The notes under the pieces were generated by a model. That model was given only the letters and a program-made list of their open reading frames with translations, searched no databases and had not been told where the DNA came from. This document shows positions 1 to 56,899 of a DNA stretch of 64,000 nucleotides, piece after piece (positions within the stretch are counted from its first letter, which is position 1; each line of letters starts with the position of its first letter). A program made the position numbers and the translations under genes. This stretch comes from Macrostomum lignano (Eukaryota), in assembly GCA_002269645.1 (NCBI GenBank), contig NIVC01001737.1, positions 62,001 through 126,000 on the forward strand. Reading direction: 5' to 3'.

Positions 1-2891
<2,891 letters not shown>

Positions 2892-15378: not shown

Positions 15379-15938
15379 TTAGTCTGTTGGTGACACATCA
15401 TTGGCAGCACTGCTGGCACCTGCAGCAGCTGGAGACACCAGTCGAACTGGTTTGCTAGCTTTTCGCCTCGAATGCTGCTGCTGCTGAGGTTGGTCTGTCT
15501 GCTTCGGCTCTTGCTGTGCAGCTGTACTCTTCCGCAAATCTAGCCCATCGCCCTCCTCTGCAGCAGCCTGCTCAGAGGATCGATTGACTCCGAGAGTTGC
15601 CGCAGAACCAGATACAATTTTATTCCTCATCCGATGATTATGAAACCAGTTCGTAACGGTTTTCACTGGCAATCGGAATTCGTTAGCCAATTGTTCAACT
15701 GTGCCAACGGCTGGATAAGGCTCCCTGCTGAAGGCCTCCAGCAGTATCGCCTTCTGCGTCTCGGTGAACATGTAACGCGACTTCTTGCTCGGAGTCGCTC
15801 CGCCCTGAGGCGAATCAACGGAGCTGGCAGCGTCGGAGAAAATCTCGCTACTGTTGTTGTTGTTATTGTTGCTATTGGGCAGTGCAGAAGTGAGAGTCAG
15901 TGAAGCCGCCGACGTTAAGTTTCGGACAGATGATCCGG
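15379..15938 (-). CDS. cux: cux last exon with homeodomain
   Basis: [54 protein letters not shown]; acceptor TTCCAG at 15939-15944; stop TAA at 15381-15379. Confidence 0.9.
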
Positions 15939-20120: not shown

Positions 20121-20151
<31 letters not shown>

Positions 20152-20262
20152 TGCATGTTCAGCAGTTCTAATTGTTTGTCCTTATCCACCGATTTTTTCC
20201 CTCGCGAACTGGCTGTAGTTGAAGAAGACGGCTTTAGAGTTGGGTCCTTATTCGGTTGCTGC

Positions 20263-20294
<32 letters not shown>

Positions 20295-31584: not shown

Positions 31585-32335
31585 GTATCTGTTTCCCCAT
31601 AGATATTCGTATTGATATTCAATTTCTAACAAATGCAACAAAATAAACCTACTTGTACAGCTCGGATTTGCTTGAAAATTTACAGAAAAATTATTACACA
31701 CAAAACAAACACCTCTGTGAAACTTCAAGTCCATCAGACCACGCAAAGCGGAATGGCAAGAGTTTTAAAGGTGCTCGTATTTATAATGCATTGTATATGC
31801 GCACAGTGTATAACATGTATGCCCATTTGCAATACTTGTACAGCTCGGATTTGCATGAAAATTTACAGAAAAATTATTACACACAAAACAAACATCTTTG
31901 TGAAACTTCAAGTCCATCAGACCACGCAAAGCGGAATGGCAAGAGTTTTAAAGGTGCTCGTATTTATAATGCATTGTATATGCGCACAGTGTATAACATG
32001 TATGCTCATTTGCAACACTTGTACAGCTCGGATTTGCATGAAAATTTACAGAAAAATTATTACACACAAAACAAACATCTTTGTGAAACTTCAAGTCCAT
32101 CAGACCACGCAAAGCGGAATGGCAAGAGTTTTAAAGGTGCTCGTATTTATAATGCATTGTATATGCGCACAGTGTATAACATGTATGCTCATTTGCAATA
32201 CTTGTACAGCTCGGATTTGCATGAAAATTTACAGAAAAATTATTACACACAAAACAAACATCTTTGTGAAACTTCAAGTCCATCAGACCACGCAAAGCGG
32301 AATGGCAAGAGTTTTTTTAAGGTGCTCGTATATCG
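31585..32335 (+). repeat. Left TIR: ~67-bp unique end plus ~3.7 x 183-bp units
   Basis: Units start at 31652, 31835, 32018 and 32201. Confidence 0.9.
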
Positions 32336-33724
32336 TATATTTATATGATGCACATATAGCTTGCTAGCTCGTAAGCGCGATGCAACGCGAAGTGCAATAC
32401 CTGCATATAGGCCCGTATATTATACATGTTACATGTACCCAGCTCATGCATGCGTGACTGCGAATTATGTCGGCACTGTTTTGGTGAGTATTCCACTCAC
32501 GTTGCAAATGTAAAATTCAATTAGCAGAATGTAATTTTCATTGCTATTAATGCAAATAGCTATTGTCCACAAACATTTCTGTTGTTAACCCTATACCAAT
32601 TCAGTCTCTGATCGTAGCTGCGTAATAAGTCATAAGTCTGAATTACTAACGCGAGCCAAATATTGCATGTACATGTATAAGCCAGCCCTGTGAAGCGCAG
32701 GTGCCAATTGTAGACTCCTCTTGGCTTGGCACGCAAGCCTAGCACAAAAATAACGCAACATTTGGCCTAATTTCTACACCACTCTATGCAACCGTTGGGA
32801 TATGCAGCTTGGGTTAAAAATACAAACTTGTTTCGAAATTTTCAAAGTGCCAGTCGCTGAGAACTTTTGATGTATTTAGTATTACATGTTACGTACATGT
32901 GCATTTATGTATATGCACGCGTGGTACTTCTAATAACATCAATAAAAGCGTGGACAGTTTTGATGAAATGCATGTAACCAATAAAAAGGTTATAACAGGA
33001 ATTTAAATTACAACAAAGATGAATACTTAAATAGATTTACATACAAAATGTACTGAACAGTTCGGCTCATAATCGCTCTATACCAACCATTAGATCGAGC
33101 ATGTGTTCCCTAATAATATTACTCTTAGTAGTCATCACGCTGTTGTCAAGCTCTCGATTAAATCGGAGCCACAAAGATCCACTGTGGCGAGAGGTCCTAC
33201 TTTTAGTGTAGAAGAGGCCCGATTGAAAACCCTGAGAAGTCCCATGAAAGTTGCAAACTGAACTATTTAAATGAGCGCTGCTCCACTCTCTGAAAGAATA
33301 TCGAACACCTGCATGGGCCGCGGTTAGAGCCCCCTGTTTTGTTCGAGTGGGAATGGTTGTTCGCCTGTTCATGTCCATGTCGGTCGATCCCCAATTCGAG
33401 TGGTCCTTAGCATAAATTGATTATATTGCATTCCATGGCTCGTAATCGAACATCTGCATAGGGGGATGAAAAAAGCGGGCGAACAAACAAAAACAACGGG
33501 ATGGGAGGGCGGCCATACATATTTTTCTAGTCAGAAAATTAGCAGCAAAAAGCAGCAGCCTCACGACCCTTCTGTACATGGAAGATTGGCCGTCGCGACT
33601 GCCACAGGTGCACTCAGAACCAGATCTAGAGAACCTCTTGCTCCAAAAATAAGGAACTGGAGAGATCCATTTACGAGTAATGGCGACATTCACGTACATG
33701 TACAGTTGTGTAAAAATCAAGTAA

Positions 33725-36700
33725 CTAATGCGAAAACATGTCTTTGCACGTTGCGCAACAAAAACCTGGATCGGTCGACCCTTCGACGCATTCTGTGTGA
33801 TACCAACGAAGACAGGAGGGACATTCAATCTAGAAATGAAGGGGTGAGCGAAAATTAACCGCATTATGCTGTAAGCACAACTCGACTGCATATTCGATCG
33901 ACTGCATCTTAAGCTGGAGTTCAATCTGTATGACTGCTTTAAGCAATCTGCTTGGCAAAAGTGAAATTCGTAGTTAAAAAAATAAAAAAAGGAAAATTAC
34001 TCGTATTTTACCCAATTTATGCGACGACTAACGCCCGAAGCGTCAGGTTCTGTGTTGCTACAGGCTGAGCACTCTTCCTGCGTTCCTCCATAGCTGTAGG
34101 CCTGGATCACATTCCAGATATACTGTCTGTATCTTCCGAGAGCCGTCGGATTGTTCTTGAACCGGAGACCAGAACCAAGAGCTAATGCCCTAGCGTACAG
34201 GCATACAAACACTCCGCAACTATGACCATCAGATTGCATTGTTCTCGACATTGTGGCCAGCTCATATGGCTTCGATGTGCTGCTGGTGAATACCGGAGCG
34301 CTTTGGTCAACAAATGCCATTATTCCATCGGAAGCCAATATGCGGCTAGAAAGTTAACAGAAATTTTACAGATTTGCCACATCAGTACTTAAGTTCACTT
34401 TTATTTATTCTCTGGACATGTACACAAACTATTGTACTCACTTCCATTTGCGAATTAGAACATGAAACTCTTGCTTCTCTTGCGCATTACGCCGAATCGA
34501 ATCCAGCACAAAGACCTTTCGTTCAACGCCGCAAATAACGATCAAGTAAAAATGCCCGCTGTTTAAAATAGGCACGATTATTTGATTCAGGCCCTGCAAC
34601 ATCAAGAGAGCAAATAATTTTATACCTCAAATTGGTGCATGCGTAAGATTTTCATTGAGAATTCACTACAAGTGTACAAATTTATTTTGCATCAAAAACG
34701 ACATTATTGTTTCATTAACAGAACTTGCCTTCCATCCGAGAGTTCTTCTCAGCAAGTTCTGGACTCCATCGTTGAACTTATCTCCTGATAGATTCAATAT
34801 GTAGTAAAAGTCGCCCTCACTTATTACAATCCTTTGGGCGTTGTTCGATGTGATAGCAGTGCAATAGGCCAATAAAATCTATCGCGAGTAATGCAAGAGG
34901 GACAGGAAAAGATAATGGTGAAAATAGGTCATAAGTCAACTGAATTTTCTATTGTAAGTATTTACGTATACTTACTTAAGTATTTATTGTAAGTAAGTAA
35001 GTATTTATGAAAATACTTACCGTGTAGTCTAACAGGTTGCTTCCCAACAAACTTTGACGATGCTCTTGCGTTACGGGAATATCCGTTCCAGAGCCAGGAA
35101 GGGTGAAGAGAATCTGGCTATTATCGCTTTGCACCGTTCTTCCTTTCTGCCGCGTGCTCCTCTTGCTTTGCCACCTGCTTCTACTGTTATCTGCGGTTCC
35201 ATTTTGACTGGAATTTTTATTGGGTCTGTTCCTACCAGCTGTGCATCCCGGAAGTTTTGATTTTGGGTTGCTCTGTTGGGACTGACTGCTACTCTTTTCC
35301 GTTTCGTCAGGATCGGCGACATTAGCAAAATACTGATTGCTACTAGTATCTGAGTATCTTGAACGCTTGCTATTTCTCGACCTTTTTTGCCAACCTTCAG
35401 TTGCAGCTTCTTCTGAGATTGATGACTTCCTTTTTCTGCAAAAACTTGGAGCAGGTACTTTGCTCGAGATGGTGCACTCTGAAACTCTACGAAGTACAAA
35501 GGGTACATAATTCTCTACGAAGGTACTCAGCCTGGACTTGGTGTTAAATCGACTTTTCACAGAAGAAAACCAACTCTCCACATGAGCATTTGAGTAAAAA
35601 GACTTTGAATTTTTAGCAATCAAATGATTCCATGTAAATATAGCCCATAGAGGGAGGATGGACAGGTATCTAAGCAAGAAAAAGTTTATCAATCGAGGGT
35701 TGTAGAATTCATTATCTGTCAGATGCGAATGACCGGTTTTATGCGCGAGAGTATTTTGAATTGTGGTAAATTCCTTTTTAAAGTATTCGTAGTATGGAGA
35801 ATTTTTCAGTATCGCGTCACCTTCCGCGTTCATACTTGCATGATCCTTGTCTTGAAGTATAAATGAGTCTTTGTTGATTGATTCGGAATACTCTGGAACA
35901 TGGCCATCTCTCAGAAAATTTGCTACCCTAGTTCTAGCAGCAACGGTTTGCTCGGCATACGGAGATCCAAATATAATAAGCGTGTCCATGATGAAGTTGA
36001 CGGATAGTTTTTGCGTACTGGAATACTGAATTAAAGAAAATAACTTCAAAAATAGCTGACGGCTTCGCTGGTTCAAGGAGTGTTTTTTGCAGTGGTCCGA
36101 AATTGACTTTATAATATGATTGCTACACAGAAAAACGCCATATTGAATCTCGCTAGGGGTGTCCGTAATAAAGTAATTGTAATGCATTTGGATGTACGTT
36201 GTCACGTCCGTGTGGTGGAAGTCTAAGCATGAATGAATTTGCGCCCATGAAAAGTCGGAAATAAAAAGAATATTTAGGTCAACAGAAAAAGGTGAGTTTA
36301 CACAGTGCAGAATTCTATGGCGGAGGAGTTTTAGAAAGTGAGAAATGGATGCAACGTTATGGGAGTCTGTAATCATATTCCCAACTGGCGACGATGGAAC
36401 AGAATCAGTAGCAGTTGTGATGACAGAATAGAGTAGAACAGGATGAGGTGAACAGTTTTTTTCTATTAACGAGCCAGTAGCGTCGATATGCAGCACTGTT
36501 GGAGTACGAGCTGACATAATTGCTCTAAGAAGCTGTATTTCAAGGTTGGACAATAATACAACACGTAGTGGATCTAAACTACGCTCCATTATGACTCCAG
36601 GAAAAATCGGATGCGGATATCGAAGTTTAAAAATGTCTTGTAGACCTCCAAGCTCAACAAAAAGAACAGAGTGTAACCTCTCGTCTTTCTCCATTTTACT

Positions 36701-37690
36701 TTTTAAATTATACATCACAGTTTTGGTTTTGCACGCATCAAAGTTGCACGACAGAATGAATGGTAAATTTTCGATCGCAAGAAAGCGTCTTCTGAATGCT
36801 TCAACGGCACCGGCCTCTTTTATATCGTCGTAAATTTCACGTTTTTCTGATTCGGTCGTTCTACGAAAACAACTAGCCGTAGCATCTTGATGGTTTAACC
36901 TTCCCGTGATAATAACCTCCCAAGACCATGTTGTTCCGTCAACACGTGGTGGTCTTCTCATTATTAAAGCGTAATTTCTTCTGCATCCTTCAATTTTGCA
37001 TTCCGCTCTAATTGTCCAAAAATTCTGCTTACTTTTTCTTGAATTCTGCTTTCGAATGTGATTATAGCCCGTCATCCTCAAACAGCACGTAGCGACTTGT
37101 CGCATAGCACGGCAAACTGCTTCATTAAGAAAACTTTTTGAAAACGTATACTTTGGTCCAGATTGACTATCTTCCACCGATAGGTTAATTTTGCAGATAT
37201 CACTCTCCGATAGTTCGATCCGATTCTCCCCAGTTTCATCAGAACTTTCCTCAACTTCTGGTGGTTGTTCGTTTGACGTCGATTGTGATGAGCTTGTAGC
37301 ATTCAAATCTACTTGTACACGCGTTGTTCTCTCTTCTCTATTCTCTGCGTTGCAAAAATCTTCGCTTTTCTGTCCATCGTCGTTTTCTACTATAGGGTCG
37401 CTGGGTTCATAAATCGTTTTATCAGCCTGACGTCTCCCGTTTAACGTTGAATGTTTTTGGCCAGCTGTATTATATGCACGTCTATTTTTCGATCTCTGAG
37501 CTTTCTTTCCTTGGACTTTTCCAGTCGGTTTATTTTTCTTGCTCTTCTGGCTACATGCACTGTTGGAACGTCCTGCAGCATCAGTCGTCTCAGTTGACTG
37601 GGGTACATGTAGCGACCTATTCATTAGACCCCAAAGATATACCCGCGATCGCAGTCGGTTTCGAATTTTGAGTGCCCGACATAAGAACAC
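33725..37690 (-). CDS. MULE/Rehavkus-type transposase fused to a Ulp1 (C48) cysteine protease and a PHD finger, 5 exons, ~1136 aa
   Basis: Exons 37690-35021, 34878-34729 (GC donor), 34593-34442, 34345-34012, 33829-33725 (sum 3411 nt, phases consistent). DDE: LHIDATG, ISDFSWA, LCSNH (CxxH), NAHVESWF. Ulp1 triad: SGHFYL, VLDSI, QSDGHSCGVF. PHD: CSAC..NW|IECPSC..WYHTEC..CATC. The start codon is uncertain. Confidence 0.85.
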
Positions 37691-38715: not shown

Positions 38716-38761
38716 GAAAATAGTACAATATTAAAATAAATTAATAAATTAAAATAGTAAT

Positions 38762-40029
38762 ATTCCGCTTTGCGTGGTCTGATGGACTTGAAGTTTCACA
38801 GAGGTGTTTGTTTTGTGTGTAATAATTTTTCTGTAAATTTTCATGCAAATCCGAGCTGTACAAGTGTTGCAAATGGGCATACATGTTATACACTGTGCGC
38901 ATATACAATGCATTATAAATACGAGCACCTTTAAAACTCTTGCCATTCCGCTTTGCGTGGTCTGATGGACTTGAAGTTTCACAGAGGTGTTTGTTTTGTG
39001 TGTAATAATTTTTCTGTAAATTTTCATGCAAATCCGAGCTGTACAAGTGTTGCAAATGGGCATACATGTTATACACTGTGCGCATATACAATGCATTATA
39101 AATACGAGCACCTTTAAAACTCTTGCCATTCCGCTTTGCGTGGTCTGATGGACTTGAAGTTTCACAGAGGTGTTTGTTTTGTGTGTAATAATTTTTCTGT
39201 AAATTTTCATGCAAATCCGAGCTGTACAAGTGTTGCAAATGGGCATACATGTTATACACTGTGCGCATATACAATGCATTATAAATACGAGCACCTTTAA
39301 AACTCTTGCCATTCCGCTTTGCGTGGTCTGATGGACTTGAAGTTTCACAGAGGTGTTTGTTTTGTGTGTAATAATTTTTCTGTAAATTTTCATGCAAATC
39401 CGAGCTGTACAAGTGTTGCAAATGGGCATACATGTTATACACTGTGCGCATATACAATGCATTATAAATACGAGCACCTTTAAAACTCTTGCCATTCCGC
39501 TTTGCGTGGTCTGATGGACTTGAAGTTTCACAGAGGTGTTTGTTTTGTGTGTAATAATTTTTCTGTAAATTTTCATGCAAATCCGAGCTGTACAAGTGTT
39601 GCAAATGGGCATACATGTTATACACTGTGCGCATATACAATGCATTATAAATACGAGCACCTTTAAAACTCTTGCCATTCCGCTTTGCGTGGTCTGATGG
39701 ACTTGAAGTTTCACAGAGGTGTTTGTTTTGTGTGTAATAATTTTTCTGTAAATTTTCATGCAAATCCGAGCTGTACAAGTGTTGCAAATGGGCATACATG
39801 TTATACACTGTGCGCATATACAATGCATTATAAATACGAGCACCTTTAAAACTCTTGCCATTCCGCTTTGCGTGGTCTGATGGACTTGAAGTTTCACAGA
39901 GGTGTTTGTTTTGTGTGTAATAATTTTTCTGTAAATTTTCATGCAAATCCGAGCTGTACAAGTAGGTTTATTTTGTTGCATTTGTTAGAAATTGAATATC
40001 AATACGAATATCTATGGGGAAACAGATAC
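38762..40029 (-). repeat. Right TIR: ~6.6 near-identical 183-bp units plus the unique end
   Basis: Reverse complement of the 31585-32335 array. Confidence 0.9.
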
Positions 40030-40531: not shown

Positions 40532-43500
40532 ATGTCTTGCCCCCAAGGATATGACAAAGCTACTATCTTTATAAAGCCAATTGCTCATGATGCCACGTAA
40601 GTTTTCAAAGTCATATCTGATGTATTATACTTTTTTAACCTAATTAACTTATAAATATTGATTCTTTTGATCACATTGCAAGCTTAATAATTATTTATAC
40701 TTAATGCAATTTTAGTTACTTATTTATATAGGTTATTTTATAGTTTAAACCTAGATATTAGGCTATGCAATGATATATACAAGCCACAAAGTTGTTCTCC
40801 TAATTGCTTAGACTAAAAGGATAATAAAGGTCTATGATACAGCAGCCACTAGGCTGAGTACCACTTTCTGTTCTATCTTTTATTGGCCTTTGACCCAGAC
40901 TAAACAATCATCCATTGTGTCATCCCAAAATTGAAAATCCTAGTTATATCACTGATGTGTTCTATATTATTATTTGAGCCTATTAAGCCTATTGAAATAA
41001 ATTTAAATCCTAATAAGTTCATAGTTTTGATTTTGCTTTGCTTGCTAAACTATTATTTCTTATATTATTATTGATTATTTCAATGAAAGCTAGGCCTATT
41101 ATTTATAAATTATCAAAGCTTTGTGTTTTAATATAAAATTATTAAATAATATTTTTGACCCTATTAATATTGCACACCATTTTTTCTTTAAAATATTTTC
41201 ATTAAATAATATACATTGACTAAGTAAAAGTTGATAGAATATGATATTGTAGTAATGTATAAAATGTTTAAAAAAGTAGTATGAAGACGCACATGTCTTT
41301 TTGCCACCAGTGAACGGGCTTCTTTTTAGATGTGGGTCTTCATACTACTTGATAAACCTAGTTTTGTACCGATAAAAAAGAACTGAGAATCTCAAGAAAA
41401 ATTTAAATCTTTACTTATCCTATTTTTCTCTGTCTGTTCTGTTTTTCTCCTTTCTAATCTCTCTCTAGTCTCCCCTCTCCTCGCTTTTCTCTCACCGTGC
41501 CTTATCTTTATCTCTTATCTTCTCTTTTCTCTTCTTCATCTATTCTTTTTTATTTCCTCTCTTATCTGGCCCGCAACCATGAACTGGAATCTTCTACAAT
41601 AGGCCCTCCTCGATCTAAAAAAATTGTCTAAAGTCTCTAGAGCGTAGCAGGGTTATACAACTCCATTTTAGCTGGTTGTTTCGGCAGAAGATCCTCTAGC
41701 TTCAGCTTAAGTGCTTGGAAAGCCAGGCCAGTCTTGTGGGACCTAATACTCATACTGACTGATACTATCAATCAGATAGTTCACTAAACTGACATAAGAT
41801 ACCTTCCGTAAGCCTCTTCTTCAACGGGGTTGCAAAGAAAGCTATAAATAAAGTTATTCCAAAACACTATACATACCTACTTAATAAGCCACGTATCGCC
41901 TGACCTTTTAGCCTGGGGGATGTACACGTAGTGACTTGGAGCTTGCCACCGGCCAAACTTTGTACTGGGCTTGCAATTCAAATGTGCCAGTTAAAGAGCT
42001 AAATTTAATACAAAATTCTAATCACGTGATGCTCGTTTATTGATCTAATTTTCCTTGGTCTGTGCGTGAGTCGCATGAAGCTCTTATTACATGCCCTCCA
42101 AACCAAGCCGCCAAGCCCTCTCGCGTTGCCACAACCCCACTTGGAAGGGACGGGTGTGTACATTATATGTACGAATATTCCTTCCTTTCCTTTCCTTTCC
42201 TTTCCTTTCCTTTCCTTTCTAACCAGCTTAACTTAGCCTAACGCCAAAGCTATGCAATGCAAGCAATCGCATGCAAATGCAGATTATGCAAATGCAGCTT
42301 AATGTGATGAATTTCGATGCAAAAAGGCATTTTTTACATGAAAAAAACATTGAATTGTTATGAAATTCAAGAAATTTGTTAAATTAACTAGATATAGAAC
42401 ACTGTGCATTGGTTTCAGTGCAAAATTCCTACCATTTCCAGTTTAAATACCTGTTAGTCCTGTTAGACCTGTTAGTACTAAATTCCAGTTAGTTAAAGAA
42501 CTAACATAAAAGTAAAAAGTCTAGTTTTCAGTTTTTTATCGATAATTTTTTACCCAATGAACTGAATCTCTAGAAATTGCACACAAATATGCCTCGTTAT
42601 GTGGGAAATCAGGTGTCATTAAAATATTGCCATCCTATTGCGTTTTTTGCCTGATTTCAAGCAAAATATTAAAAAATCACTACTCTGATCGATTTCTAAT
42701 CACTTTTGACACATGAGCACTTGTTGCAGACACTCAAAAACTTGGTCAATTTTAGCCAGACATTAGTACAACTCGTTGCAGTATCCGCATTTGATCTACC
42801 ATTGTTTTAAAAATTTAATCACCCATTTTTCTGGCACCCAATCAGCCAAAAATCACAAATTATCGATTTCTGATCAATTTTTCAACCCGAAAGCAGCAAA
42901 ATCAGACGGCGGCAATTTAAACCAATATAGTACAGCAACTATGCTATAGAAATTTGAAATCGGCTTATTCGCACCATGCTCTCAAAATTATAATGAGCAA
43001 TAATGCGAAAGTCGTGATTTTTTTAAAAATCGATTTTTGTCAATTTTCTCAGCACTGCACAATTGTAGGGAAACAAAACTCTAGACACTTGTAGATTTTT
43101 GCATTGCGCATCCAACTGCACTGCTTTGAAGCCTAAACTCAAAAAGCTTTGTAGGAAAAATTGGCAAATAATAAAATAAAGGTCATTTTTTTACCCAAAA
43201 AAACTATCAAAACTGCATAAAGATGCCGAAATAAATTAAAGTGCCATACACCATTTTGTAGGAAATTTAGTTTTACAACTTTGATCCTTAGATGTCGAAG
43301 CCGTATCTCGTAAGGTGTACCAGAATTTTGAGATCTCCCAGAAGCACTTTTGAAAAAATCATCTTTCCACTTAATTTATGGCTTAGTAATAAAATCTCTG
43401 CACTTAAAAGTATATTCATTTGATAGATTTAAAAGTTTTCTATCGATTGACACCTCACTCAACTCAATTGGTGCAGTGGTTGCAAAACAGGAGCATTTTT

Positions 43501-46500
43501 GGCGAAAAAACGTGAAATTTAAAAATGCATGGGAGTCTAACTTATTTACTCGCCCTCGGCCCCTAGTGGGGCCTCAGGTTCTCTCGCTCTCGCCCGACGC
43601 CGCCTTCGGCGGCACCAGGCTTGGCTCGTTCACTGGTGGAACTAGAAGTATTATATTTATTAAGAGTTATAGAAAGATATTCTAGTTCCTAAAAACCATT
43701 CTCTTTTAAACTGTATTTTGGGATAAGAGCCAAAGATTCTAGATAATAAAAGCTTAAACTTATTAAAACTTCAAATATATGGCTAGTATGAGCTGCCTAT
43801 TGTAATTTGGTCAGTTTTTATCATTGATGGGTGAAAGCATATCTAGATACAATGGTTTTTTATGAAATGATACTCACTATTGCTATCAAACAAGATTTAA
43901 TTTGCATCAAATCTAGTATATTTAAGCAGTTTTCCACTAGGCATGGATTGAGAAAATTTTTGAGAGAGAAAGCAAGCTATACTAAGCACTATTGGAAAAT
44001 AGGATTGGCATAGTTGCAAACCAAAATAGTATAGCCTATTTTTTGGCCACAGCCTGCTAGTTGTCTGCTAGTTGTAAAAGTTATAGCTAATCAAATGATA
44101 TCTCTATTTGTGTGATGCAAAATATATTGCTATGCCATGAATATGAAAATAAAATTTGTTAATTCTGTTTAGTATTTTTATTTAAAATATAACTCTACTT
44201 TTTATATTTAAAAAAATTGAATATTTAATTTGATTGATTATTCTAAAGTAAAAAATGTAACATAGATGCTATTCAATCTAATATTTTTGTACCTTTTTAC
44301 TAAAGTTACCTAATAAAACTTCACTTGCATTTTAGTGTGGAAGAGCTACAACTCTACTATGAACAATTTGGAGACATTCTTTCAGTAAATATACCAGCAG
44401 ATCGACTGACTCAACAATTCAAGGGCTATGCATTCATTGAATATCCTTTTGTTAAAATTTTATTTGATACACCATTTGATAATTCTTAAAAATAACGCTA
44501 AACCACATTTTTATTACTGAATGAGTTGGCATTCATCCCCCCTGATTCTTTTGGTCTGGCAGTGTCAGTCATGCTTCAAAATTCTTGTATTAAACTTGAA
44601 GCAGGGGCGTCGCCATGGATTTTATGGGGGTACAAAGCCAAGAATTCAACATGTACATATACATGACTAAATTCCTACATTTCCATTATTTTGAGGATCG
44701 TGTTGTTAGCACTCATCTTAGCGCCGCAGCCATTCCTTTTAGCGCCGCAGGCACTCATTTTGGCGCCGCAGGCACTCATTTTAGAGCCGCAGGCACTCAT
44801 TTTAGAGCCGCAGGCACTCATTTTAGAGCCGCAGGCACTGATTTTGGCGCCGCAGCCATACCCTTTTTAGCGGCGCACTCATTTTAGAGCCGCAGGCACT
44901 CATTTTGGCGCCGCAGGCACTCATTTTGGCGCCGCAGCCATACCCTTTTTAGCGGCGCACTCATTTTAGAGCCGCAGGCACTCATTTTGGCGCCGCAGGC
45001 ACTCATTTTGGCGCCGCAGCCACTCATTTTGGCGCCGCAGCCATACCCTTTTTAGCGGCGCACTCATTTTAGAGCCGCAGGCACTCATTTTGGCGCCGCA
45101 GCCATACCCTTTTTAGCGGCGCACTCATTTTAGAGCCGCAGGCACTCATTTTGGCGCCGCAGCCATACCCTTTTTAGCGGCGCACTCATTTTAGAGCCGC
45201 AGGCACTCATTTTGGCGCCGCAGCCATACCCTTTTTAGCGGCGCACTTATTTTAGAGCCGCAGGCACTCATTTTGGCGTCGCAGGCACTCATTTTGGCGC
45301 CCTGAAGAAAAACTATTGATTACCACGACTAATAAAGGTGGGGTGGGGAGGACAAAGCATTGACATGTCCTCCCAATAGCTTTTACTGTGGGACATGTCC
45401 CCCCCCCCCGGTGGCGACGCGCCTGACTTGAACCATTATTTCCCCTATTACAAGGTTAAGCATTTTTAATTTCAAATCATCTGTCTGTCATCATTTCAAA
45501 TTTCTTGACACATCGGACCACTATAGGAATAGCCAGACTGCTATATGATTGAAATTTTTCTTGCCTTGTTTTCTATTGAATTTAGTTTCCTTAACCATTG
45601 AGCCTTAAAACGCATCAATTATGGCCACCCAATCAATCTGCTGTCATCTCATATGTGCTTCTTGGCTGTCTGTCTGTACATTTCTTCACCCCGACGATGC
45701 CGCAACTGCTAGAGATCGCACCAACGGATCGATTCTGTTAGGCCACAATGTTACAGTGGAGATCGCCGAAGGACCCAGAAAAAGTGAGTCTGTCAAGTTT
45801 TATGACTTCTGATTCCGTATTTTTGAATTTTTGAGTCATCACGCGAAGTTGTATGCAATATTTTACTGTTAACATCAGACTGCACACAAGCAATAAGGTT
45901 TAAGCTGTTTCAACTTATTTTCCAGCAACCCAAACATGTCGTTCAGTGCCGCAGTGCTTTATCACAGTGTAAAACCAGTGTAAAATTACAGCGCAGTCAG
46001 TTTGATCAGCGGTAAATCAGCTCCATGAATTGCATCCTTGAGCGCATGGATTTCGCAGTCACAGAAAGCATTGGATTGTCTTATGAATTATGAGTTGATA
46101 CTGCATGCTCTCTCTTTCTGATAAGGGAGCTGGTGCACTTTAATAGTGCTTGACTCAGAAAATCAGAAACTTCATGGTTACAGTTCAGCAATTTTCTCAT
46201 CAGTTTCCGAAGGTGACATGCAGAGTTTAAAACGCAGAACGTAGTGCGTCCTGTACAGAAATTTGCAGTCGTGCAGTTTGCCCCATGTGCATTCGTAATC
46301 ATGAAGGGTTCTTCTTGAATGCTAAACAATGTAAGCGATTCGATTATATCTGAATTTTTTACTTTCATATTTTTAGAACATTACGCTTTTAGTCTTTATT
46401 TAATCGGTCTTTTTGTTTTTGATAGATTTGCTATGGCTTAGGAGGGGGCCATCACAAGCTCGAAAAATCACATCGTTGAAAAGCATCCACCATCACAAGC

Positions 46501-48052
46501 TCGAAAAGTCATATGCTCGAAAAATCACATCGTCGAAAAGTTTAGCAACCACCATGATAAACTCGAAAAGTCATATGCTCGAAAAATCACATCGCCGAAA
46601 AGTTTAGCAACCACCATCATAAGCTCGAAAAGTCATATGCTCGAAAAATCACATCGCCGAAAAGTTTAGCAACCACCATCATAAGCTCGAAAAGTCATAT
46701 GCTCGAAAAATCACATCGCCGAAAAGTTTAGCAACCACCATCATAAGCTCGAAAAGTCATATGCTCGAAAAATCACATCGCCGAAAAGTTTAGCAACCAC
46801 CATCATAAGCTCGAAAAGTCATATGCTCGAAAAATCACATCGCCGAAAAGTTTAGCAACCACCATCATAAGCTCGAAAAATCACAAGCTCGAAAACTCAC
46901 ATCGTCGAAAACTGATTTAGCATCCTCCATCACAAGCTCGAAAAGAGTTAGGGTTAGTGCTTGTGCCTTAGGGTTCAGGGTTAGGTTAGAGTTGGTGCCT
47001 TGGGGTTAGTGTTAGAGCTAGAGATTGTGGTTGCTAAATCAGTTTTCGACGATATGACTTTTCGAGTTTGTGATGGTGGTTGCTAAACTTTTCGACATTG
47101 TGATTTTTCGAGCTTATGATGGCGACCCGCGTGGGAAGAGTCCCAATATCTTCGGAATAGCAAACGGGATTTAGATCAACTATATTGCTCTAGATTTAAT
47201 TTTAAAGCTAATTGATTTAGTTTTAAAGCTAATTGGATTATTCTAAACTGACACTGACAGTTTCGTGTAAACTTGAAGCTTGTGTTTCCCATACTTACTC
47301 CCATTCCCATCTTACGTACAGTTGTATACTGCTGTTCCCCTCAAGGGAGAGTATTCAGCTGCCTGCAGGAAGGAATGTATATACATTACTAGTGCTCCCA
47401 CAGTAGTACCCTTTAAAGGTGTTATGTCGTAGTTTCTCACGCACCAGGGCCCTTGAACGAAGGTATTTACAGACTCTTCATTGAAGGTATTCGTAGTTGC
47501 GCCCACGGCAAAACCCATCTACAAGCTTTACATGCTAATAAAAACAGGTGACTTTTTAATATAGAAAGCATGCTTCAAGGTCGTGTCCAAATGCCTGCAA
47601 TTAAACTGCAACATCCGAACAAATCTAAAACAGCGCCAGCTGAAATGCAGCACCGAAAAGATGTTCGACGCCGATTTCAAAGTAGTCGCGACTATCGCGG
47701 CCGTTCGGATAGAAGCTATCATCAGCATCGGTCTTCGTTTGGCAATGCCGGCAGGCATCCCCGAGACCAATACAGATCATCTGAGCAGGCGCATCGCCGA
47801 CCGCAATTTGAGCGGTCGCGTTCTCGTAGACGCGAGTTCGTACCCACGAGGAGACGACACATTGAGCCAATTATTCGTGTGAGTCCGTCCACTTCGCCAT
47901 CTGTGGACGGTTCTCAGTCTCATAAGCGATCGGTGTCCAGGTCGATGTCTAGGTCTAGGTCTAGATCAAGGTTTGGACGCAAATTCGAACGAGATTTGCG
48001 CTCGATCGAACGGTCGCGATCTAATTCACCGTCGAGACTGGAGTCTCGTTAG
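40532..48052 (+). CDS. SRSF10: SRSF10/SRSF12-like SR protein (one RRM + RS domain), 4 exons, 230 aa
   Basis: Exons 40532-40596 (65 nt, AC|GTAAGT), 44336-44440 (105 nt), 45680-45783 (104 nt, A|GTGAGT), 47634-48052 (419 nt), total 693 nt. Protein MSCPQGYDKATIFIKPIAHDAT|VEELQLYYEQFGDILSVNIPADRLTQQFKGYAFIE|FLHPDDAATARDRTNGSILLGHNVTVEIAEGPRKT|PAEM... aligns without gaps to the SRSF10 RRM as I recall it (..RGFAYVQFEDVRDAEDA..IQFAQGDRKTPNQM). C-terminal RSRSRSR tracts. Confidence 0.88.
41274..41350. other. 77-nt stem-loop in intron 1 of the SRSF10-like gene
   Basis: AAGTAGTATGAAGACGCACAT (41274-41294) pairs with ATGTGGGTCTTCATACTACTT (41330-41350) with one mismatch. Confidence 0.6.
42178..42222. 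repeat. (TTTCC)n microsatellite
   Basis: About 8 direct units. Confidence 0.9.
43938..44060. mobile_element. Decayed copy of the 24139 MITE
   Basis: Shares AGAAAATTTTTGAG..GCAAGCTA.AC.AAGCACTA..TTGGAAAATAG..CATAGTT with 24139-24318, with many C>T/G>A changes. Confidence 0.65.
44441..45679 (+). other. U12-type (minor spliceosome) AT-AC intron 2 of the SRSF10-like gene
   Basis: 5' splice site ATATCCTTTT at 44441; branch-site consensus TTCCTTAAC at 45587-45595; terminal AC at 45678-45679 restores the RRM reading frame (GA|A = Glu). Confidence 0.88.
44602..45425. mobile_element. hAT-like MITE (CAGGGGCGTCGCCA family) with an expanded ~21-bp minisatellite, inside the U12 intron
   Basis: Same family as 13580-13924; flanks ACTTGAAG (44594-44601) and ACTTGAAC (45426-45433); GCAGGCACTCATTTTGGCGCC-type units at ~44720-45300. 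Confidence 0.8.
46444..47128. mobile_element. Foldback-type MITE with a 62-bp tandem array in the left arm (intron 3 of the SRSF10-like gene)
   Basis: Left end GGGGGCCATCACAAGCTCGAAAAATCACA; right end revcomp GGGTCGCCATCATAAGCTCGAAAAATCACA; 62-bp period (46611, 46673...); GGGTTAG-rich spacer at 46945-47015. Confidence 0.75.
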
Positions 48053-49039
48053 GATTCTTAATACAGTAGAAGTTTCTGAATTGTTATTCGTTTGATATTT
48101 TCTGCCAAATAGACAATACCAGAAATTATCCAAGCTATCATTTTATGGTTTTTCCCACTCGATGCTTTGTATTTCGCCAAATATTTATTGATTTTTTGTC
48201 AGTTACAGAGTAATTCATTGAGGTACTATTGACATATTATATCCAGGTGTGACGGCTCACGGTGTGCTGGCTTATTTAAATGTTTCCGATCTACTTGCCT
48301 TCTGTGTGCTTAATGGAAATCAGTGCATACTAATTATTATATAAAAATTAAAATAGAATTTCAGCGTTTGCATTTTAATTTCGCTCAGTAAGGCTTTTAG
48401 TAACCTGTTTGCCAATATTCAATTATACAAACATTCTGACTTCAAGACTGCTGAAATTACTCTATTATGGTGCATTACTAATGTGTGCTACTCAAAGTAG
48501 ACTATAAGACGTCTTATTTGTGTTTCCTTTTAAAGGAAGTATTTCTGAAATCTTAGTACTAAACCCAAAAGTTATTGATGGTACACACTTAGTGACCTTA
48601 TTGTTACATTCGACGTTTGCTTTTTGCTATTCATCCTTGTGTGCTATATTCAAGTTTTTCATTTTTTTCTGCCTTTAACTACCTTATTTTTGCCGTGTTA
48701 TTAAGCTGTGCTTTTTCCCCTCAATATTCAAGAGTTTCGTTTATTCCGTTGTTATTTATATTTTCTTGTGTGATCAATTGTTATCGATTTTTGAAATCGA
48801 TTTGAAATAGAGCGTAGGCACTAACTGATTGCGTTGCCTTGACCTTGAGCATGTGTTTATACTAGTTTTCCTTTGCAGTATGCATTAAAACATTTAATTA
48901 TCGCTTGGTCTTCCCATTTAAGAGTGCAGTGAATTAGGAGTCTTATGAAACTTTTGGACAGCACTACCTGAAGCTCTGCATTACACCACCTACTACATTT
49001 GATAGGCTGCTGATTTTACCAGTCGCTACATTTTAAAGG

Positions 49040-49400
49040 CTACTGGACTACATTATACCATTTGCTACATGTACATTTGAAAGGCTGCTGCATTACACCA
49101 GTTGCTACATTTGAAAGGCTGCTGCATTACACCAGTTGCTACATTTAAAAGGCTGCATTACACCAGTTGCTACACTTGAAAGGCTGCATTACACCAGTTG
49201 CTACATCTGAAAGGCTGCATTACACCAGTTGCTACATTTGAACGGCTGCTGCATTACACCAGTTGCTACATCTGAAAGGCTGCATTACACCAGTTGCTAC
49301 ATCTGAAAGGCTGCATTACACCAGTTGCTACATCTGAAAGGCTGCATTACACCAGTTGCTACATTTGAAATGCTGCATTACACCAGTTGCTACATTTGAA
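49040..49400. repeat. 30-33-bp minisatellite (TTACACCAGTTGCTACATTTGAAAGGCTGCA)
   Basis: About 11 direct units. Confidence 0.9.
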
Positions 49401-50274
49401 ATGCCAATGCAGCTAATATAAGCGAGAGCTTTATTTGATGGTCAAGGTCACGAGTGCGCGTATGCTGCATATACATAAATTTCGTCAGTTGCTACATTTA
49501 ACAGCCTACTTAATGCATTTCACCGCTTGCTTGTTTGATAACCTTGAGTTCACCTAGATAGCTTCATTCTAGATCTAAATGTATTCATTATATACTGCAG
49601 CTGCATGTAACACATGTAACACATGTGATACATGTAACACAAACGAGCCGTACATGTACAAGGCTATAAATTAACTTACATGTTGCACGAAGTGTAGTAG
49701 TGTATATAGAGAAGTCTATAATTGGCGATTTAGATAAGATATGACAATCGTGCATACAGGCATGCTGCATACAGTTAAAATGCTTGTCAACAGTATTACA
49801 ATATAATGTTGCATGTACACGCTCGGAATTAGCTAAAATGCTTGTCTAAAGCTTACTTTATTAGCTGTGCACAACTTAATTGTAAAATGCGTCCACGTGT
49901 ACGCGTACATATTAATTATTTCTACGCATACATATGTACATGTCGATTACGAGCTGAGTTTACATACATCGATCAGTTTCTTAGTTTTATTATATGTGCT
50001 TTTCTTTCGTTTCGTACGCCCGTATATGTACGTGCACTACTTAACAGAATAGAGTGGAGATCGCTGCTGCGGCACTTACAGAAAAACTCCTTTCTTATTC
50101 AAAATTAGGCTATAAGTAGTGCTCGACCTTTATTTCGGTAAAATTAGGTAGAATATACTTATTTTTCTATATTTATATGCTAAAATTATTATTTTAACTT
50201 TCTTGCAGGCGCAGTGCAGGTACATGTACATATATGCGCTGATTAACATGAATACCAACGGCCATTTTCCGCCC

Positions 50275-51378: not shown

Positions 51379-52058
51379 TGTTAGCTCGTAAGGAGTCGCC
51401 AATGCAGTCAAGGAGCGTCGGGAACAGAGGGGAACTCGATGTCTTCATCCAATTCAAGCCAATTCACCGTAAATTCAAGTCATTGGTTGGACTCTCTGCG
51501 CTAATTAATTGCATAATACACAGTTCTCGATTCGCTGATCATGTTTCCTCGCGCACGGTGCGACGGCTGACTTGATTTGTAAATACCGGAAGTTCTCAAG
51601 CTATATAATGTAGAATAGAGCTTATACAAATAGTATAAGACTTTGTCTGCCTGTTTATAATTCGACCCGATGAACACACTGCAGGCTATACAGCAGACGC
51701 GCCAGTTCACGTGACGATATGCAGATTAGGTGCTGAAACTGCACGTGACAATTGGACTCTGTATTGCTCGTTCGCGTGCAGTCACAATATACTAAATCTC
51801 TAATATTGTCTAAGTTGTTTATATGCATAATTCTTGCCCTTGCCCAGCTGGTTGGGCGTTTCTAATTCACAGCAAGGGTGGCGCGTGCCCATGCAGTTGC
51901 CAGCTGATTTTTACGCCCCCACGATGGCACCGCGATATTGTACCGGTCCCGATGTGAGCCCCTGTTAGTACTGGCCCCTAGAGACGCTGACCTCCAATAA
52001 AAATTTTCTACATTGTAATCAGGATTTCATAATATTACCAATTCTACAATGAAAAATC

Positions 52059-53395
52059 GGGTCAATGAGATTTGCCCGCAGACGAATTGCCACCGAGATT
52101 TGCCCACCGAGCTTTTCCCGCCAAGCTTTTCCCGCCGAGATTTGCCCACCGAGCTTTTCCCGCCAAGCTTTTCCCGCCGAGATTTGCCCGCAGGAGATTT
52201 TCCCGCCGAGATTTGCCCGCCGAGATTTTCCCGCCGAGATTTTCCCGCCGAGATTTGCCCGCCGAGATTTGCCCGCCGAGTTTTTCCCGCCAAGCTTTTC
52301 CCGCCGAGATTTTCCCGCCAAGCTTTTCCCACCGAGATTTTCCCGCCAAGCTTTTCCCGCCAAGATTTTCCCGCCAAGCTTTTCCCGCCGGGATTTTCCC
52401 GCCAAGCTTTTCCCGCCGAGATTTTCCCGCCGGGCTTTTCCCGCAGGAGATTTGCCCGCCGAGATTTTCCCGCCGAGCTTTGCCCGCAGGAGATTTGCCC
52501 GCCGAGATTTTCCCGCCGATATTTTCCCGCCGAGATTTGCCCGCCGAGATTTTCCCGCCGAGATTTGCCCGCCGAGATTTTCCCGCCGAGATTTTCCCGC
52601 CGAGATTTGCCTGCCGAGATTTGCCCGCCGAGATTTGCCCGCCGAGTTTTTCCCGCCAAGCTTTTCCCGCCGAGATTTGCCCGCCGATATTTTCCCGCCA
52701 AGCTTTTCCCGCCGAGATTTTCCCGCCAAGCTTTTCCCACCGAGATTTTTCCGCCGAGATTTTCCCGCCAAGCTTTTCCCGCCGAGATTTTCCCGCCAAG
52801 CTTTTCCCACCGAGATTTTCCCGCCGAGATTTTCCCGCCGAGATTTTCCCGCCGAGATTTTCCCGCCAAGCTTTTCCCGCCGAGATTTTCCCGCCAAGCT
52901 TTTCCCGCCGGGATTTTCCCGCTAAGCTTTTCCCGCCGAGATTTTCCCGCCGGGCTTTTCCCGCAGGAGATTTGCCCGCCGAGATTTTCCCGCCGAGCTT
53001 TGCCCGCAGGAGATTTGCCCGCCGAGATTTTCCCGCCAAGCTTTTCCCGCCGAGATTTGCCCGCCGATATTTTCCCGCCAAGCTTTTCCCGCCGAGATTT
53101 GCCCGCCGATATTTTCCCGCCAAGCTTTTCCCGCCGAGATTTGCCCGCAGGAGATTTGCCCGCCAAGCTTTTCCCGCCAAGCTTTTCCCGCCAAGTTTTT
53201 CCCGCCGAGATTTTCCCACCGAGATTTGCCCGCAGATATTTTCCCGCCAAGCTTTTCCCGCCGAGATTTGCCCGCAGGAGATTTGCCCGCCAAGCTTTTC
53301 CCGCACGAGATTTGTATTCCGGGCTTTTCCCGCTGAGAACTCGGCGGGCAAATATCGGCGGGCAAATCTCCTGCGGGAAAAGCTTGGCGGGCAAG
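52059..53395. repeat. Expanded 13-14-bp array (CCCGCCGAGATTT/CCCGCCAAGCTTTT); TIR of the 10179/13238 foldback family
   Basis: Begins with the family terminus GGGTCAATGAGATTTGCCCGCAGACGAATTGCC; orientation flips at ~53337. Confidence 0.9.
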
Positions 53396-53944
53396 TATGT
53401 AACATTCCTATGTTCACAATACATTGATTAAATGGGGTTACCGTTAAATCACGTGTACAAGCTTTAGAAAGGCCAGCTATTGAATGACTGCTATTTTAGT
53501 TTATTGACTCTGCGCTTGTTGTGTAGGCAGTCATTATTTTATTTTCTCATGCCCTCGTGTTTTTTTAGTCCTGACCAAATCGACTAAAATTACATTTCAT
53601 GTTTTTCTTTACCTTCTGATTATAACAAATGCTTGGTACAGAATGTGTATCCAGTGTTTGTGCCCGCGGCCACGGGGTTGAAAATTTATGCAAAAATTTA
53701 TCGTTATATTTTATAACCCAACTGGCTCCTTGCAACATGTTGGTGTATACAATCAGAATGTATATTCGTATGTGAAAATTATTCTTGGTTGGGTGGATAT
53801 TGTTTCTGGCCCTTCTTCTCAGTCTTGTGTTGTGCATGCATGTAGCATATGTTGGCGTACCCAAGGGGTGCCGGGTAGGGTAGAGGCAGGGGCTATGCCT
53901 CATGGCTGACACTCAGAATTATTTGGCTGAGTTTTGCCACTTCA

Positions 53945-55668
53945 CTCAAGCGGAATGGCGCTTCCTTAAATGAAATGGCGCCCCACTCAAACCGAATGGC
54001 ATCCCAATCAAATGAAATGGCATCCCACTCAAATGAAATGGCATCCCAATCAAATGAAATGGCATCCCACTCAAATGAAATGGCATCCCACTCAAATGAA
54101 ATGGCATCCCAATCAAATGAAATGGCATCCCAATCAAATGAAATGGCATCCCACTCAAATGAAATGGCATCCCACTCAAATGAAATGGCATCCCAATCAA
54201 ATGAAATGGCATCCCAATCAAATGAAATGGCATCCCAATCAAATGAAATGGCATCCCACTCAAATGAAATGGCATCCCAATCAAATGAAATGGCATCCCA
54301 CTCAAATGAAATGGCATCCCAATCAAATGAAATGGCATCCCACTCAAATGAAATGGCGCCCAACTCAAATGCAATGGCGCCCAACTCAAATGCAATGGCG
54401 CCCAACTCAAGTTAAATGGCGAACAACTCAAGTGAAATGGCGCTCAACTCAAATGCAATGGTGCCCAACTCAAGTTAAATGGCGAACAACTCAAATGAAA
54501 TGGCGCTCAACTCAAATGCAATGGTGCCCAACTCAAATGAAATGGCGCCCAACTCAAATGAAATGGCGCCCAACTCAAATGAAATGGCGCCCAACTCAAG
54601 TGAAATGGCGCCCAACTCAAATGAAATGGCGCCCAACTCAAATGAAATGGCGCCTAACTCAAATTCAATGGTGCCCAACTCAAATGAAATGGCGCCCAAC
54701 TCAAATGAAATGGTGCCCAACTCAAATGAAATGGCGCCCAACTCAAGTGAAATGGCGCCCAACTCAAATGAAATGGCGCCCAACTCAAATGAAATGGCGC
54801 CTAACTCAAATTCAATGGTGCCCAACTCAAATGAAATGGCGAGCAACTCAAATGAAATGGCGCCTAACTCAAATGAAATGGCATCCCAACTCAAATGAAA
54901 TGGCATCCAACTCAAATGAAATGGCATCCCAATCAAATGAAATGGCATCCCACTCAAATGAAATGGCATCCCACTCAAATGAAATGGCATCCCAATCAAA
55001 TGAAATGGCATCCCAATCAAATGAAATGGCATCCCACTCAAATGAAATGGCATCCCACTCAAATGAAATGGCATCCCAATCAAATGAAATGGCATCCCAA
55101 TCAAATGAAATGGCATCCCACTCAAATGAAATGGCATCCCACTCAAATGAAATGGCATCCCACTCAAATGAAATGGCATCCCACTCAAATGAAATGGCAT
55201 CCCAATCAAATGAAATGGCATCCCACTCAAATGAAATGGCGCCCAACTCAAATGCAATGGCGCCCAACTCAAATGCAATGGCGCCCAACTCAAGTTAAAT
55301 GGCGAACAACTCAAGTGAAATGGCGCTCAACTCAAATGCAATGGTGCCCAACTCAAATGAAATGGCGCCCAACTCAAATGAAATGGCGCCCAACTCAAAT
55401 GAAATGGCGCCCAACTCAAATGAAATGGCGCCCAACTCAGGTGAAATGGCGCCCAACTCAAATGAAATGGCGCCCAACTCAAATGAAATGGCGCCCAACT
55501 CAAATTCAATGGCGCCCAACTCAAATGAAATGGCGCCCAACTCAAATTCAATGGCGCCCAACTCAAATGAAATGGCGCCCAACTCAAATGAAATGGCGCC
55601 CAACTCAAATTCAATGGCGCCCAACTCAAATGAAATGGCGCCCAACTCAAGATAAATGGCAACCCCCA
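53945..55668. repeat. 21-bp minisatellite (AAATGAAATGGCATCCCACTC) with higher-order structure
   Basis: 21-bp period; CATCCC-type and CGCCC-type blocks alternate; the variant block GTTAAATGGCGAACAACTC recurs at ~54411, 54474 and 55294. Confidence 0.95.
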
Positions 55669-56899
55669 CATGCTACATGTAATTCCGGACTACCACATCG
55701 GCAAATCAGGATACAACGAGAGTCCAGGACTGCTCAAGAGCAAAGAAGGTCCTGCTGTGTAAAATTTTGAATTTCAGATAATTGCACGCTATACTTTTAA
55801 ATAGGATGGGCGTGTATGCATACTGTATGCCCATACAATATAGAAATACATTGTGTTTGTTGACCCATTCCGAAATCCGAATAAATAAGAGAGCTACCGA
55901 GTTTGTATATTGACCCTCAAATTTTGACAAATGCAGCCAGTCTGACTCATTCTGCATAGTCAACGCATCTCAAAACGCATCTCGTATGCATACACAATGC
56001 GCGTTCCTTTCGGTTTTAGACGGCCGGCCTTCTCTTGCTTGCTGCTTCTTCAGTTCTTCTCTCGACTCTTTGCAGGCTCGGGAGGGGGGCTGCGCGACTG
56101 CGCACAGCAACTCAAAATCAGCCATGCACGCGCCCCAACTTATATGCCTGTATAATATTAATAATGCTATTATTATATGCATGGCTCCAGTTCCTGCGCG
56201 GCGCGGCGCATTTGGTAGAATCGTAGCAGATTTCGTATGCCATTAAGCAGGATTGCCCCATTCGCGCACCGCATTACCTTTGTTAGCTTTTGTAAGAACT
56301 TCAGTCAGTCTTGGGCGGCTCGCATGAATGGCCCGCGCAAGTCGCAGCTCGCCTTCCTTTGAATTTGAACTCGCGCCCAGTGGTCCTCCCCCCCCTGAGC
56401 CCAAAAAATTCTCGTCTCAACTCGTTTCGCAATTGAGAACAAAGCGCCAAGCCTTAAACTAACCTGGCCCGCAACTGCTGCTCCAATTCTTTCAAGTTTC
56501 TTCTTCCGGCCCTAAATGCATACGGGTCTCATTCGATCTGAAAAGTTAGTTGGCACTAACTACCTGCATGGATGAACAGCTGTTGCCGCAGTTCTCCATG
56601 CCTCCAGGCTTGCTAATTATTGTGCTTATGCTGTATTTACATCTCAGCTATAGAGCTACATGTAGAATTCTATAGTGAAACCTGTCTACGACAAACCTAA
56701 CTTAAACATAACGTAACCTAACTTTGTCAGCTTGCAATATCGGGTGCTAATTTGTGTTTTGGATTGCAACGAACCGTTTTGGATTGCATATTCTGCGCAG
56801 CGTTGGAGCTATACGGTTTTTTTTTATTTCAGGTCAACGAAAGACTTAGCCTAAACTTAGAAGTGGCAGGTTGTGCCGAGGTGCTCTATATCTAATCAA

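Follow-up and report, generated by a model that had tools for sequence, protein, structure and literature searches.

The second coding intron of BOX15_Mlig005216g1, a gene of Macrostomum lignano contained in the 64,000-nucleotide (nt) stretch of genomic DNA analysed here (hereafter the window: contig NIVC01001737.1 of assembly GCA_002269645.1, positions 62,001 to 126,000), has AT-AC termini and lies at exactly the site and in the phase of a U12-type intron found in SRSF10 genes from cnidarians to birds. Mlig005216g1 is probably a fast-evolving descendant of SRSF10/SRSF12 that exists in at least three near-identical copies, and its intron 2 would be the ancestral minor-class intron of this family. 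In mechanistic terms, the U11/U12 di-snRNP (small nuclear ribonucleoprotein) would recognize the donor ATATCCTTT together with a U12 branch site; splicing by the minor spliceosome would then connect position 44440 to position 45680 with AT-AC termini, which would restore the RNP1/beta3 strand of the RNA-recognition motif (RRM). Both the dependence on the minor spliceosome and the choice of the branch point are steps that we infer.

The gene occupies positions 40532-48052 of the window, and its annotated range is the same as that given in the original prediction. The deposited locus is identical to the window at every base, and the translation of the four-exon model (230 amino acids, aa) matches the deposited protein PAA64597.1 ('hypothetical protein BOX15_Mlig005216g1') from end to end at 100% identity. 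The gene had been described as 'hidden', which it is not, since GenBank already annotates it as a hypothetical RRM protein; the list of open reading frames (ORFs) misses it because exon 1 comprises just 65 nt and exon 2 sits in a 54-aa ORF. The predicted joining of exons of 65, 105 and 104 nt into a gap-free RRM agrees with the deposited model in coordinates and translation, and the spliced coding sequence (40532-40596 + 44336-44440 + 45680-45783 + 47634-48052; exons of 65, 105, 104 and 419 nt) encodes a continuous RRM (Pfam RRM_1 at residues 12-81, 54.5 bits) as well as an Arg/Ser tail, i.e. the C-terminal 139 aa, with 47% R+S and 25 RS/SR dipeptides. The gene is organized as follows:

40532-40596 (+): coding exon 1, 65 nt, from ATG to ..GCCAC, ending in phase 2 and followed by the donor gtaagt; length and phase match exon 1 of Aplysia and Priapulus SRSF10.
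40597-44335 (+): intron 1, GT-AG, 3739 nt, gtaagt ... ttttag.
44336-44440 (+): coding exon 2, 105 nt, acceptor ttttag; RNP2-distal RRM sequence up to KGYAFI-E(GA).
44441-45679 (+): intron 2, the conserved minor-class intron, AT-AC, 1239 nt, phase 2.
44441-44449 (+): U12-type 5' splice site ATATCCTTT, matching the consensus at 9/9 positions and identical in the three Macrostomum copies.
44709-45301 (+): tandem array inside intron 2, with 21/61/82-nt units and a length that varies between gene copies.
45680-45783 (+): coding exon 3, 104 nt, remainder of the RRM to GPRK, followed by the donor gtgagt.
45784-47633 (+): intron 3, GT-AG, 1850 nt, phase 1, gtgagt ... aaacag.
47634-48052 (+): coding exon 4, acceptor aaacag; TPAEM linker and Arg/Ser-rich tail, with the stop codon TAG at 48050-48052.

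Intron 2 starts with ATATCCTTT and ends with gtAC, the AC at 45678-45679 being the annotated productive acceptor. AT-AC is the sole recognized terminal pair that reproduces the annotated protein, with no alternatives from an exhaustive junction search by spliced mapping; in particular, this search found no GT-AG pair able to do so, and the sole neutral shift of the junction by 1 nt gives TA-CA. The intron had been predicted to split the RRM right after RNP1. It does split the RRM, but it cuts into the seventh codon of RNP1 (KGYAFIE|F), i.e. inside the end of RNP1 rather than after it.

As criteria for U12-type introns we used a 5' splice site /[AG]TATCCTTT, a branch site TCCTTAAC, AT-AC or GT-AG termini and a spacing of 10-20 nt between branch site and acceptor. 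By number alone, the motifs in the window do not exceed chance, as RTATCCTT occurs five times (3.9 expected) and the branch motif TTCCTTAAC once (0.61 expected); the other RTATCCTT matches, at 4639, 7251, 31378 (-) and 40552 (-), were set aside as chance occurrences in AT-rich non-coding sequence. The significance of the motifs derives from their position, since the donor 9-mer begins at the very nucleotide of the U12 donor of six orthologues and the lone TTCCTTAAC falls in the last 93 nt of the intron.

The GenBank annotation of this assembly was generated from RNA evidence alone, i.e. from STAR/StringTie/TACO assemblies, BLAT-mapped Trinity transcripts and TransDecoder ORFs (PMC5730564). Transcript data thus underlie the annotated join 44440^45680, which indirectly has RNA support through the annotation method; the RNA-seq check of this junction that had been proposed is thereby answered in an indirect way. 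The AT-AC junction is used in the transcript-based models at three M. lignano loci.

For a comparison across animals, the N-terminal part of human SRSF10 was used as a query and recovered named SRSF10/12 proteins from many phyla, and six loci were fetched and the proteins mapped onto the DNA with a spliced mapper: Aplysia (mollusc, P0083), Lingula (brachiopod, P0112), Paramuricea (cnidarian, P0119), Priapulus (priapulid, P0082), Tetraodon (teleost, L008) and Limosa (bird, L009). The Tetraodon and Limosa models were corrected by hand, as their deposited junctions at the U12 intron were wrong. In all six orthologues and the three Macrostomum copies, the coding exons are 65 or 68, 105 and 104 nt long and the intron phases are 2/2/1. 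The second intron is U12-type in each of the six, at the same codon and in the same phase as in Macrostomum, with subtypes that vary among species; the donors fit [AG]TATCCTT, and a CCTTRAC-like motif places the branch A 9-13 nt from the acceptor. For intron 2 of the individual species, the donor, branch motif, 3' end and distance from branch A to acceptor are:

Aplysia: ATATCCTTC, CCTTAAC, AG, 9 nt.
Lingula: ATATCCTTG, TCCTTAAC, AC, 11 nt.
Paramuricea: GTATCCTTT, TTCTTAAC, AG, 10 nt.
Priapulus: ATATCCTTT, TCCTTGAC, AC, 13 nt.
Tetraodon: ATATCCTTT, CCTTAAC, AT, 11 nt.
Limosa: ATATCCTTT, CCTTAAC, AC, 10 nt.

A shared U12 intron at the exact same site in animals from cnidarians to birds means that the intron predates the cnidarian-bilaterian split, and the AT-AC minor intron carried by mouse and human Srsf10 (PMC7244321) agrees with the Macrostomum position. 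The claim of a conserved U12 AT-AC intron is thereby borne out by the bird, the teleost and SRSF10 genes from four invertebrate phyla. A 'SRSF10' of Scyliorhinus torazame (P0036; L006, BFAA01005017.1) was rejected as a comparator; it encodes the RRM plus linker in a single 488-nt exon without any of the three conserved introns and looks like a processed retrocopy. A search for a second flatworm locus with the SRSF10-like P0003 RRM gave just short metagenome fragments. As a side observation, the deposited models of Tetraodon SRSF10 (L008 3293-4243) and Limosa (L009 3300-5063) either read through the ATATCC donor or invent junctions, and the Tetraodon intron 2 appears to be of the rare AT-AT subtype.

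At the protein level, the first 106 residues of the Macrostomum protein align with SRSF10 orthologues gap-free, also across the exon junctions, with 25-29% identity. The linker reads GPRK|TPAEM as compared with GDRK|TPNQM, so that RKTPxxM is kept and is cut by a phase-1 intron at the same nucleotide, and the protein has the single N-terminal RRM plus Arg/Ser-rich domain that characterizes SRSF10/SRSF12. An exhaustive representative library search with the M. lignano protein turned up no relative with more than 50% identity beyond M. lignano; for orthology this search is uninformative, because multi-RRM proteins dominate its ranking. Judged by sequence similarity alone, the protein cannot be assigned to the SRSF10 family. 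Based on three intron positions with their phases, one of these introns being U12-type, on the match of residues 9-100, on the linker and on the RS tail, we regard the gene as a fast-evolving descendant of SRSF10/12.

Several observations weigh against this assignment of gene and intron. The support for the junction 44440^45680 is indirect, coming via the annotation method. With a profile of the SRSF10 family built from 88 SRSF10-like N-termini, the Macrostomum protein obtains 57.5 bits, whereas clear SRSF10-like proteins reach approximately 130 bits, SC35-like proteins of plants and protists 83-92 bits and single RRMs of unrelated multi-RRM proteins 40-65 bits. No minor small nuclear RNA (snRNA) was found in the 64-kilobase (kb) window, with no Rfam match at the gathering threshold. 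Finally, the presumed branch A at 45594 is located 85 nt before the last base of intron 2 in all three copies, as compared with 9-13 nt in the six orthologues. In U12 introns, a branch-to-acceptor distance of 10-20 nt, with an optimum of 11-13 nt, is reported as a functional constraint (PMC8199999), and this short spacing is absent from the Macrostomum intron. Between motif and annotated acceptor there are three further AG or AC dinucleotides, and the last 26 nt of the intron are devoid of adenosine. The relevant elements are:

45587-45595 (+): branch motif TTCCTTAAC, a perfect U12 branch-site consensus, present as a single copy in the 64 kb and kept in all three gene copies.
45596-45677 (+): spacer between branch motif and acceptor, containing gAG, aAC and cAC, and ending in a 26-nt A-free T/G/C tract.
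45601-45602 (+): gAG, at +8 from the branch A, too near and out of frame.
45610-45611 (+): aAC, at +17, giving a frameshift and premature stop with a 99-aa product.
45627-45628 (+): cAC, at +34, in frame and adding 17 residues within the RRM.

Thus, of the donor, branch site and AC acceptor that had been predicted, the donor and the AC acceptor stand, but the branch site does not have the canonical distance. That TTCCTTAAC lies near the end of intron 2 by accident is unlikely, given a chance expectation of approximately 0.0005 copies for the final 100 nt of the intron, and nearer than 71 nt to the acceptor no alternative branch motif scored above 4.5/8. Either the flatworm minor spliceosome would tolerate a distal branch site or else a cryptic branch point would be used. 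A more specific proposal is that the A of TTCCTTAAC really branches for the productive AT-AC junction, with the acceptor four to eight times beyond the limit of 10-20 nt of vertebrates and plants, and with aAC (+17) and cAC (+34) being skipped; competition between acceptors could then be a lineage-specific switch that tunes the output of this SRSF10-like gene, replacing the donor competition of vertebrates. We put this forward as a tentative and rather doubtful idea.

Some yeast introns shorten the effective distance between branch point and acceptor through RNA structure. In the minimum free energy fold of the Macrostomum spacer, a closing helix of 45601-45604 with 45664-45667 is predicted in all three copies, which would put the acceptor approximately 17 nt from the branch A. 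The stability of this fold is no better than that of shuffled sequences (z of +0.4, -0.2 and +0.9 in the three copies), and no compensatory change was found across the three copies, so that a modelled RNA fold which might bring the acceptor closer to the branch A is only a lead. A duplex scan of intron tails with the branch-binding segment of U12 was dropped as non-discriminating, since T-rich stretches score like true sites.

The most probable alternative accepts U12 dependence and questions the acceptor: aAC (45610-45611) or cAC (45627-45628), both close to TTCCTTAAC, would mostly be used, and 45679, being neither the main nor the only acceptor, would compete with these non-productive or variant sites. 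The proximal distances fit the 10-20 nt rule better, and unproductive splicing is common in the autoregulation of SR genes (PMC7244321). Moreover, the paralogues differ at five positions in the final 51 nt of the intron, and four of these substitutions are synonymous third-position changes in the frame of exon 3 (p approx. 0.045), which is a weak hint that a cAC-extended exon might be coding in some isoform, although this pattern comes from just five sites. Yet all three transcript-derived models use 45679, the 17-aa Cys-rich insert would fall in the RRM between RNP1 and helix 2, and the aAC is not preceded by the usual pyrimidine at -3. Overall, this alternative appears unlikely to us.

Less probable still is an escape of the intron from the minor spliceosome, in which the U12 motifs would be relics and removal would occur by the major spliceosome or a hybrid pathway, via a U2-type branch near CTCAT (-29) and the T/G/C-rich tract. 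The 3' end is indeed unlike that of a U12 intron, given the branch motif 85 nt off and an A-free pyrimidine/G tract before the acceptor, and vestigial U12-like introns that have turned U2-type are known in nematodes (PMC1557818). Those listed there are, however, U12-type-like GT-AG introns, and for Sheth et al. an AT-AC intron is recognized as U2-type when its donor conforms to the U2-type 5' splice site except for the terminal dinucleotides (PMC1557818), whereas the Macrostomum intron has retained a perfect ATATCCTTT donor and AT-AC termini. The intact state of both 9-mers would be unlikely if they were relics, and the putative U2 branch region varies between paralogues. Recognition of donor and branch site by U11/U12 is cooperative, which also speaks against such an escape.

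Equally improbable is that the gene is no SRSF10/12 orthologue at all and encodes another RRM plus RS protein that is alike by chance or convergence: the low identity, a family-profile score equal to that of generic RRMs, and a search whose top matches are multi-RRM proteins speak for it, but three introns at identical aligned codons and phases, exons of 105 and 104 nt that are identical in length, a shared intron of the rare U12 type in every species mapped, a gap-free profile alignment with residues 9-100 on profile positions 9-100 and the RKTPxxM linker with RS tail speak against it.

With a descendant of SRSF10/12 that has kept its ancestral U12 intron as the preferred reading, M. lignano would be expected to retain a minor spliceosome, as suggested by the perfect donor and branch 9-mers, the AT-AC termini and the transcript-derived junction. 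The original prediction had drawn the same conclusion, and it is a sound one in view of the 9/9 donor and of the AT-AC junction in the transcript-built models of three copies. In other flatworms, U11, U12, U4atac and U6atac are all on record, both for Schistosoma (PMC2770079) and for Schmidtea (PMC6312358), and Schistosoma is reported to have minor introns (PMC10639083); since the minor snRNAs are already known in flatworms, the Macrostomum finding leaves the general picture of flatworm splicing unchanged. A search of the literature library at hand returned no paper mentioning Macrostomum lignano together with the minor spliceosome, and Macrostomum is not listed in the available portion of the supplement to a pan-eukaryotic survey of minor introns. 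A permissive Rfam scan of the gene produced just a chance microRNA-like match.

In the vertebrate Srsf10 module, a major GT donor shortly downstream competes with the minor donor, and the minor intron contains a poison exon 3 that has an SRSF10-dependent GA-rich enhancer as well as an alternative poly(A) site (Meinke et al. 2020, eLife, PMC7244321). In the bird locus (L009), the competing major donor ATTA|gtgagg is found at +27. In Macrostomum, a crude scan of the initial 400 nt of intron 2 with a position weight matrix detected no competing GT donor with a score over 4, this cut-off being strict, as the annotated donors of the Macrostomum gene score 3.9 and 5.0. On this crude scan, the vertebrate competing major donor thus has no counterpart in Macrostomum, and the claim that the association of SRSF10 with its minor intron is ancient finds support for the intron itself, from cnidarians to birds, but none for the proposed link to autoregulation. 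Most of intron 2 of the Macrostomum gene consists of the tandem array that is variable between copies.

The at least three copies of the gene in M. lignano are Mlig005216g1 in the window, Mlig005216g2 (L010, P0136) and Mlig015740g2 (L002, P0002). They are alike in having four exons, ATATCCTTT, TTCCTTAAC and AC, and the 230-codon ORF is intact in all three, with pN/pS (the ratio of non-synonymous to synonymous differences per site) of 0.16-0.48 from small counts. The P0002 model of Mlig015740g2 (L002 28068-28343) has exons 1-3 spliced to an exon approximately 15 kb downstream instead of the RS exon; a matching acceptor, tttcag|GCGATTCTG, is present in the window at 57505, i.e. 9.4 kb beyond the stop codon. 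This downstream join probably stems from transcriptional read-through or from a chimeric transcript, in a transcriptional unit that is trans-spliced. The window also shares runs of perfect identity with L002 at 45410-45628 (219 nt) and 48345-50229 (1885 nt), while the copies otherwise differ by 3-11%, which suggests gene conversion or mosaic homogenization between duplicated regions of a polyploid genome. The 219-nt run surrounds the branch site and was rejected as a sign of constraint, given that the 1885-nt run exists downstream of the gene.

The surroundings of the gene contain a number of further elements. Within the gene itself, intron 3 carries a 62-nt tandem array (46482-46945) that adjoins degenerate TTAGGG-like, i.e. 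telomere-type, repeats (46947-47023). Exons of a CUT-homeobox gene (CUX/ONECUT-like) are found at 15379-20555 (-), with the CUT domain at 19575-20555, the homeodomain at 15379-15771 and long poly-glutamine runs, and an open exon of 321 aa at 5400-6365 (+) encodes a basic helix-loop-helix domain (Pfam HLH, E 6e-10). A retrotransposon lacking long terminal repeats (non-LTR) is represented at 199-2336 (+) by ORFs for reverse transcriptase and RNase H, in GC-rich (58%) sequence. A 904-aa ORF at 34976-37690 (-), without a Pfam match, lies between inverted copies of one tandem array (31633-32367 (+) and 38741-39981 (-)), and ORF and flanking arrays may together represent a large transposable element that is bounded by terminal inverted repeat arrays. 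Finally, 52000-55800 consists of kilobases of short-unit tandem repeats that are open in all six frames and are the source of strong composition skews there.

Overall, our data on genomic sequence of seven phyla-level lineages show that, from cnidarians to birds, one and the same nucleotide of SRSF10 is the site of a U12 intron, and this intron would also have been kept in a flatworm whose protein has diverged almost past recognition. It could thus serve as a useful marker for SRSF10 orthologues and for retention of the minor spliceosome in fast-evolving lineages. The one really unusual feature, of possible interest to specialists, is that a perfect branch motif and the acceptor used in transcripts are 85 nt apart; should the distal branch site be functional, the rule of a short branch-to-acceptor distance in U12 introns would not be universal.

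Among known systems, the minor intron of vertebrate Srsf10 (FUSIP1/SRp38), which connects exon 2 and exon 4 (PMC7244321), resembles the Macrostomum intron in lying after 65+105 nt of coding sequence, in phase 2 and within the RNP1 codons, and in having an ATATCC-type donor, AT-AC termini (with bird L009 and teleost L008 checked), a next exon of 104 nt and the RKTPxxM linker. It differs by the major GT donor approximately 27 nt downstream and by the poison exon 3 with its alternative poly(A) site, with no evident counterpart of either in Macrostomum, as well as by a branch motif at 10-11 nt instead of 85 nt, and the proteins are approximately 27% identical. The invertebrate SRSF10/12 genes of Aplysia, Lingula, Priapulus and Paramuricea share exon lengths, phases and the site of the U12 intron 2 with Macrostomum, with subtypes being AT-AC, AT-AG or GT-AG. 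Identity to human SRSF10 amounts to 61-75% for their proteins, and their branch A lies 9-13 nt from the acceptor, in contrast to a far more diverged Macrostomum protein and a displaced motif. With respect to canonical U12 AT-AC introns (/ATATCCTTT ... TCCTTAAC, 10-20 nt, AC/), the Macrostomum intron matches perfectly in donor 9-mer, branch 9-mer and termini, but differs in its spacing of 85 nt and the A-free T/G/C-rich tract that precedes the acceptor. A long gap between branch point and acceptor, together with a long A-poor tract, is likewise found in U2-type introns with distant branch points such as that of alpha-tropomyosin (cited in PMC1557818), which are introns of the major spliceosome, unlike the proposed minor-class intron of Macrostomum.

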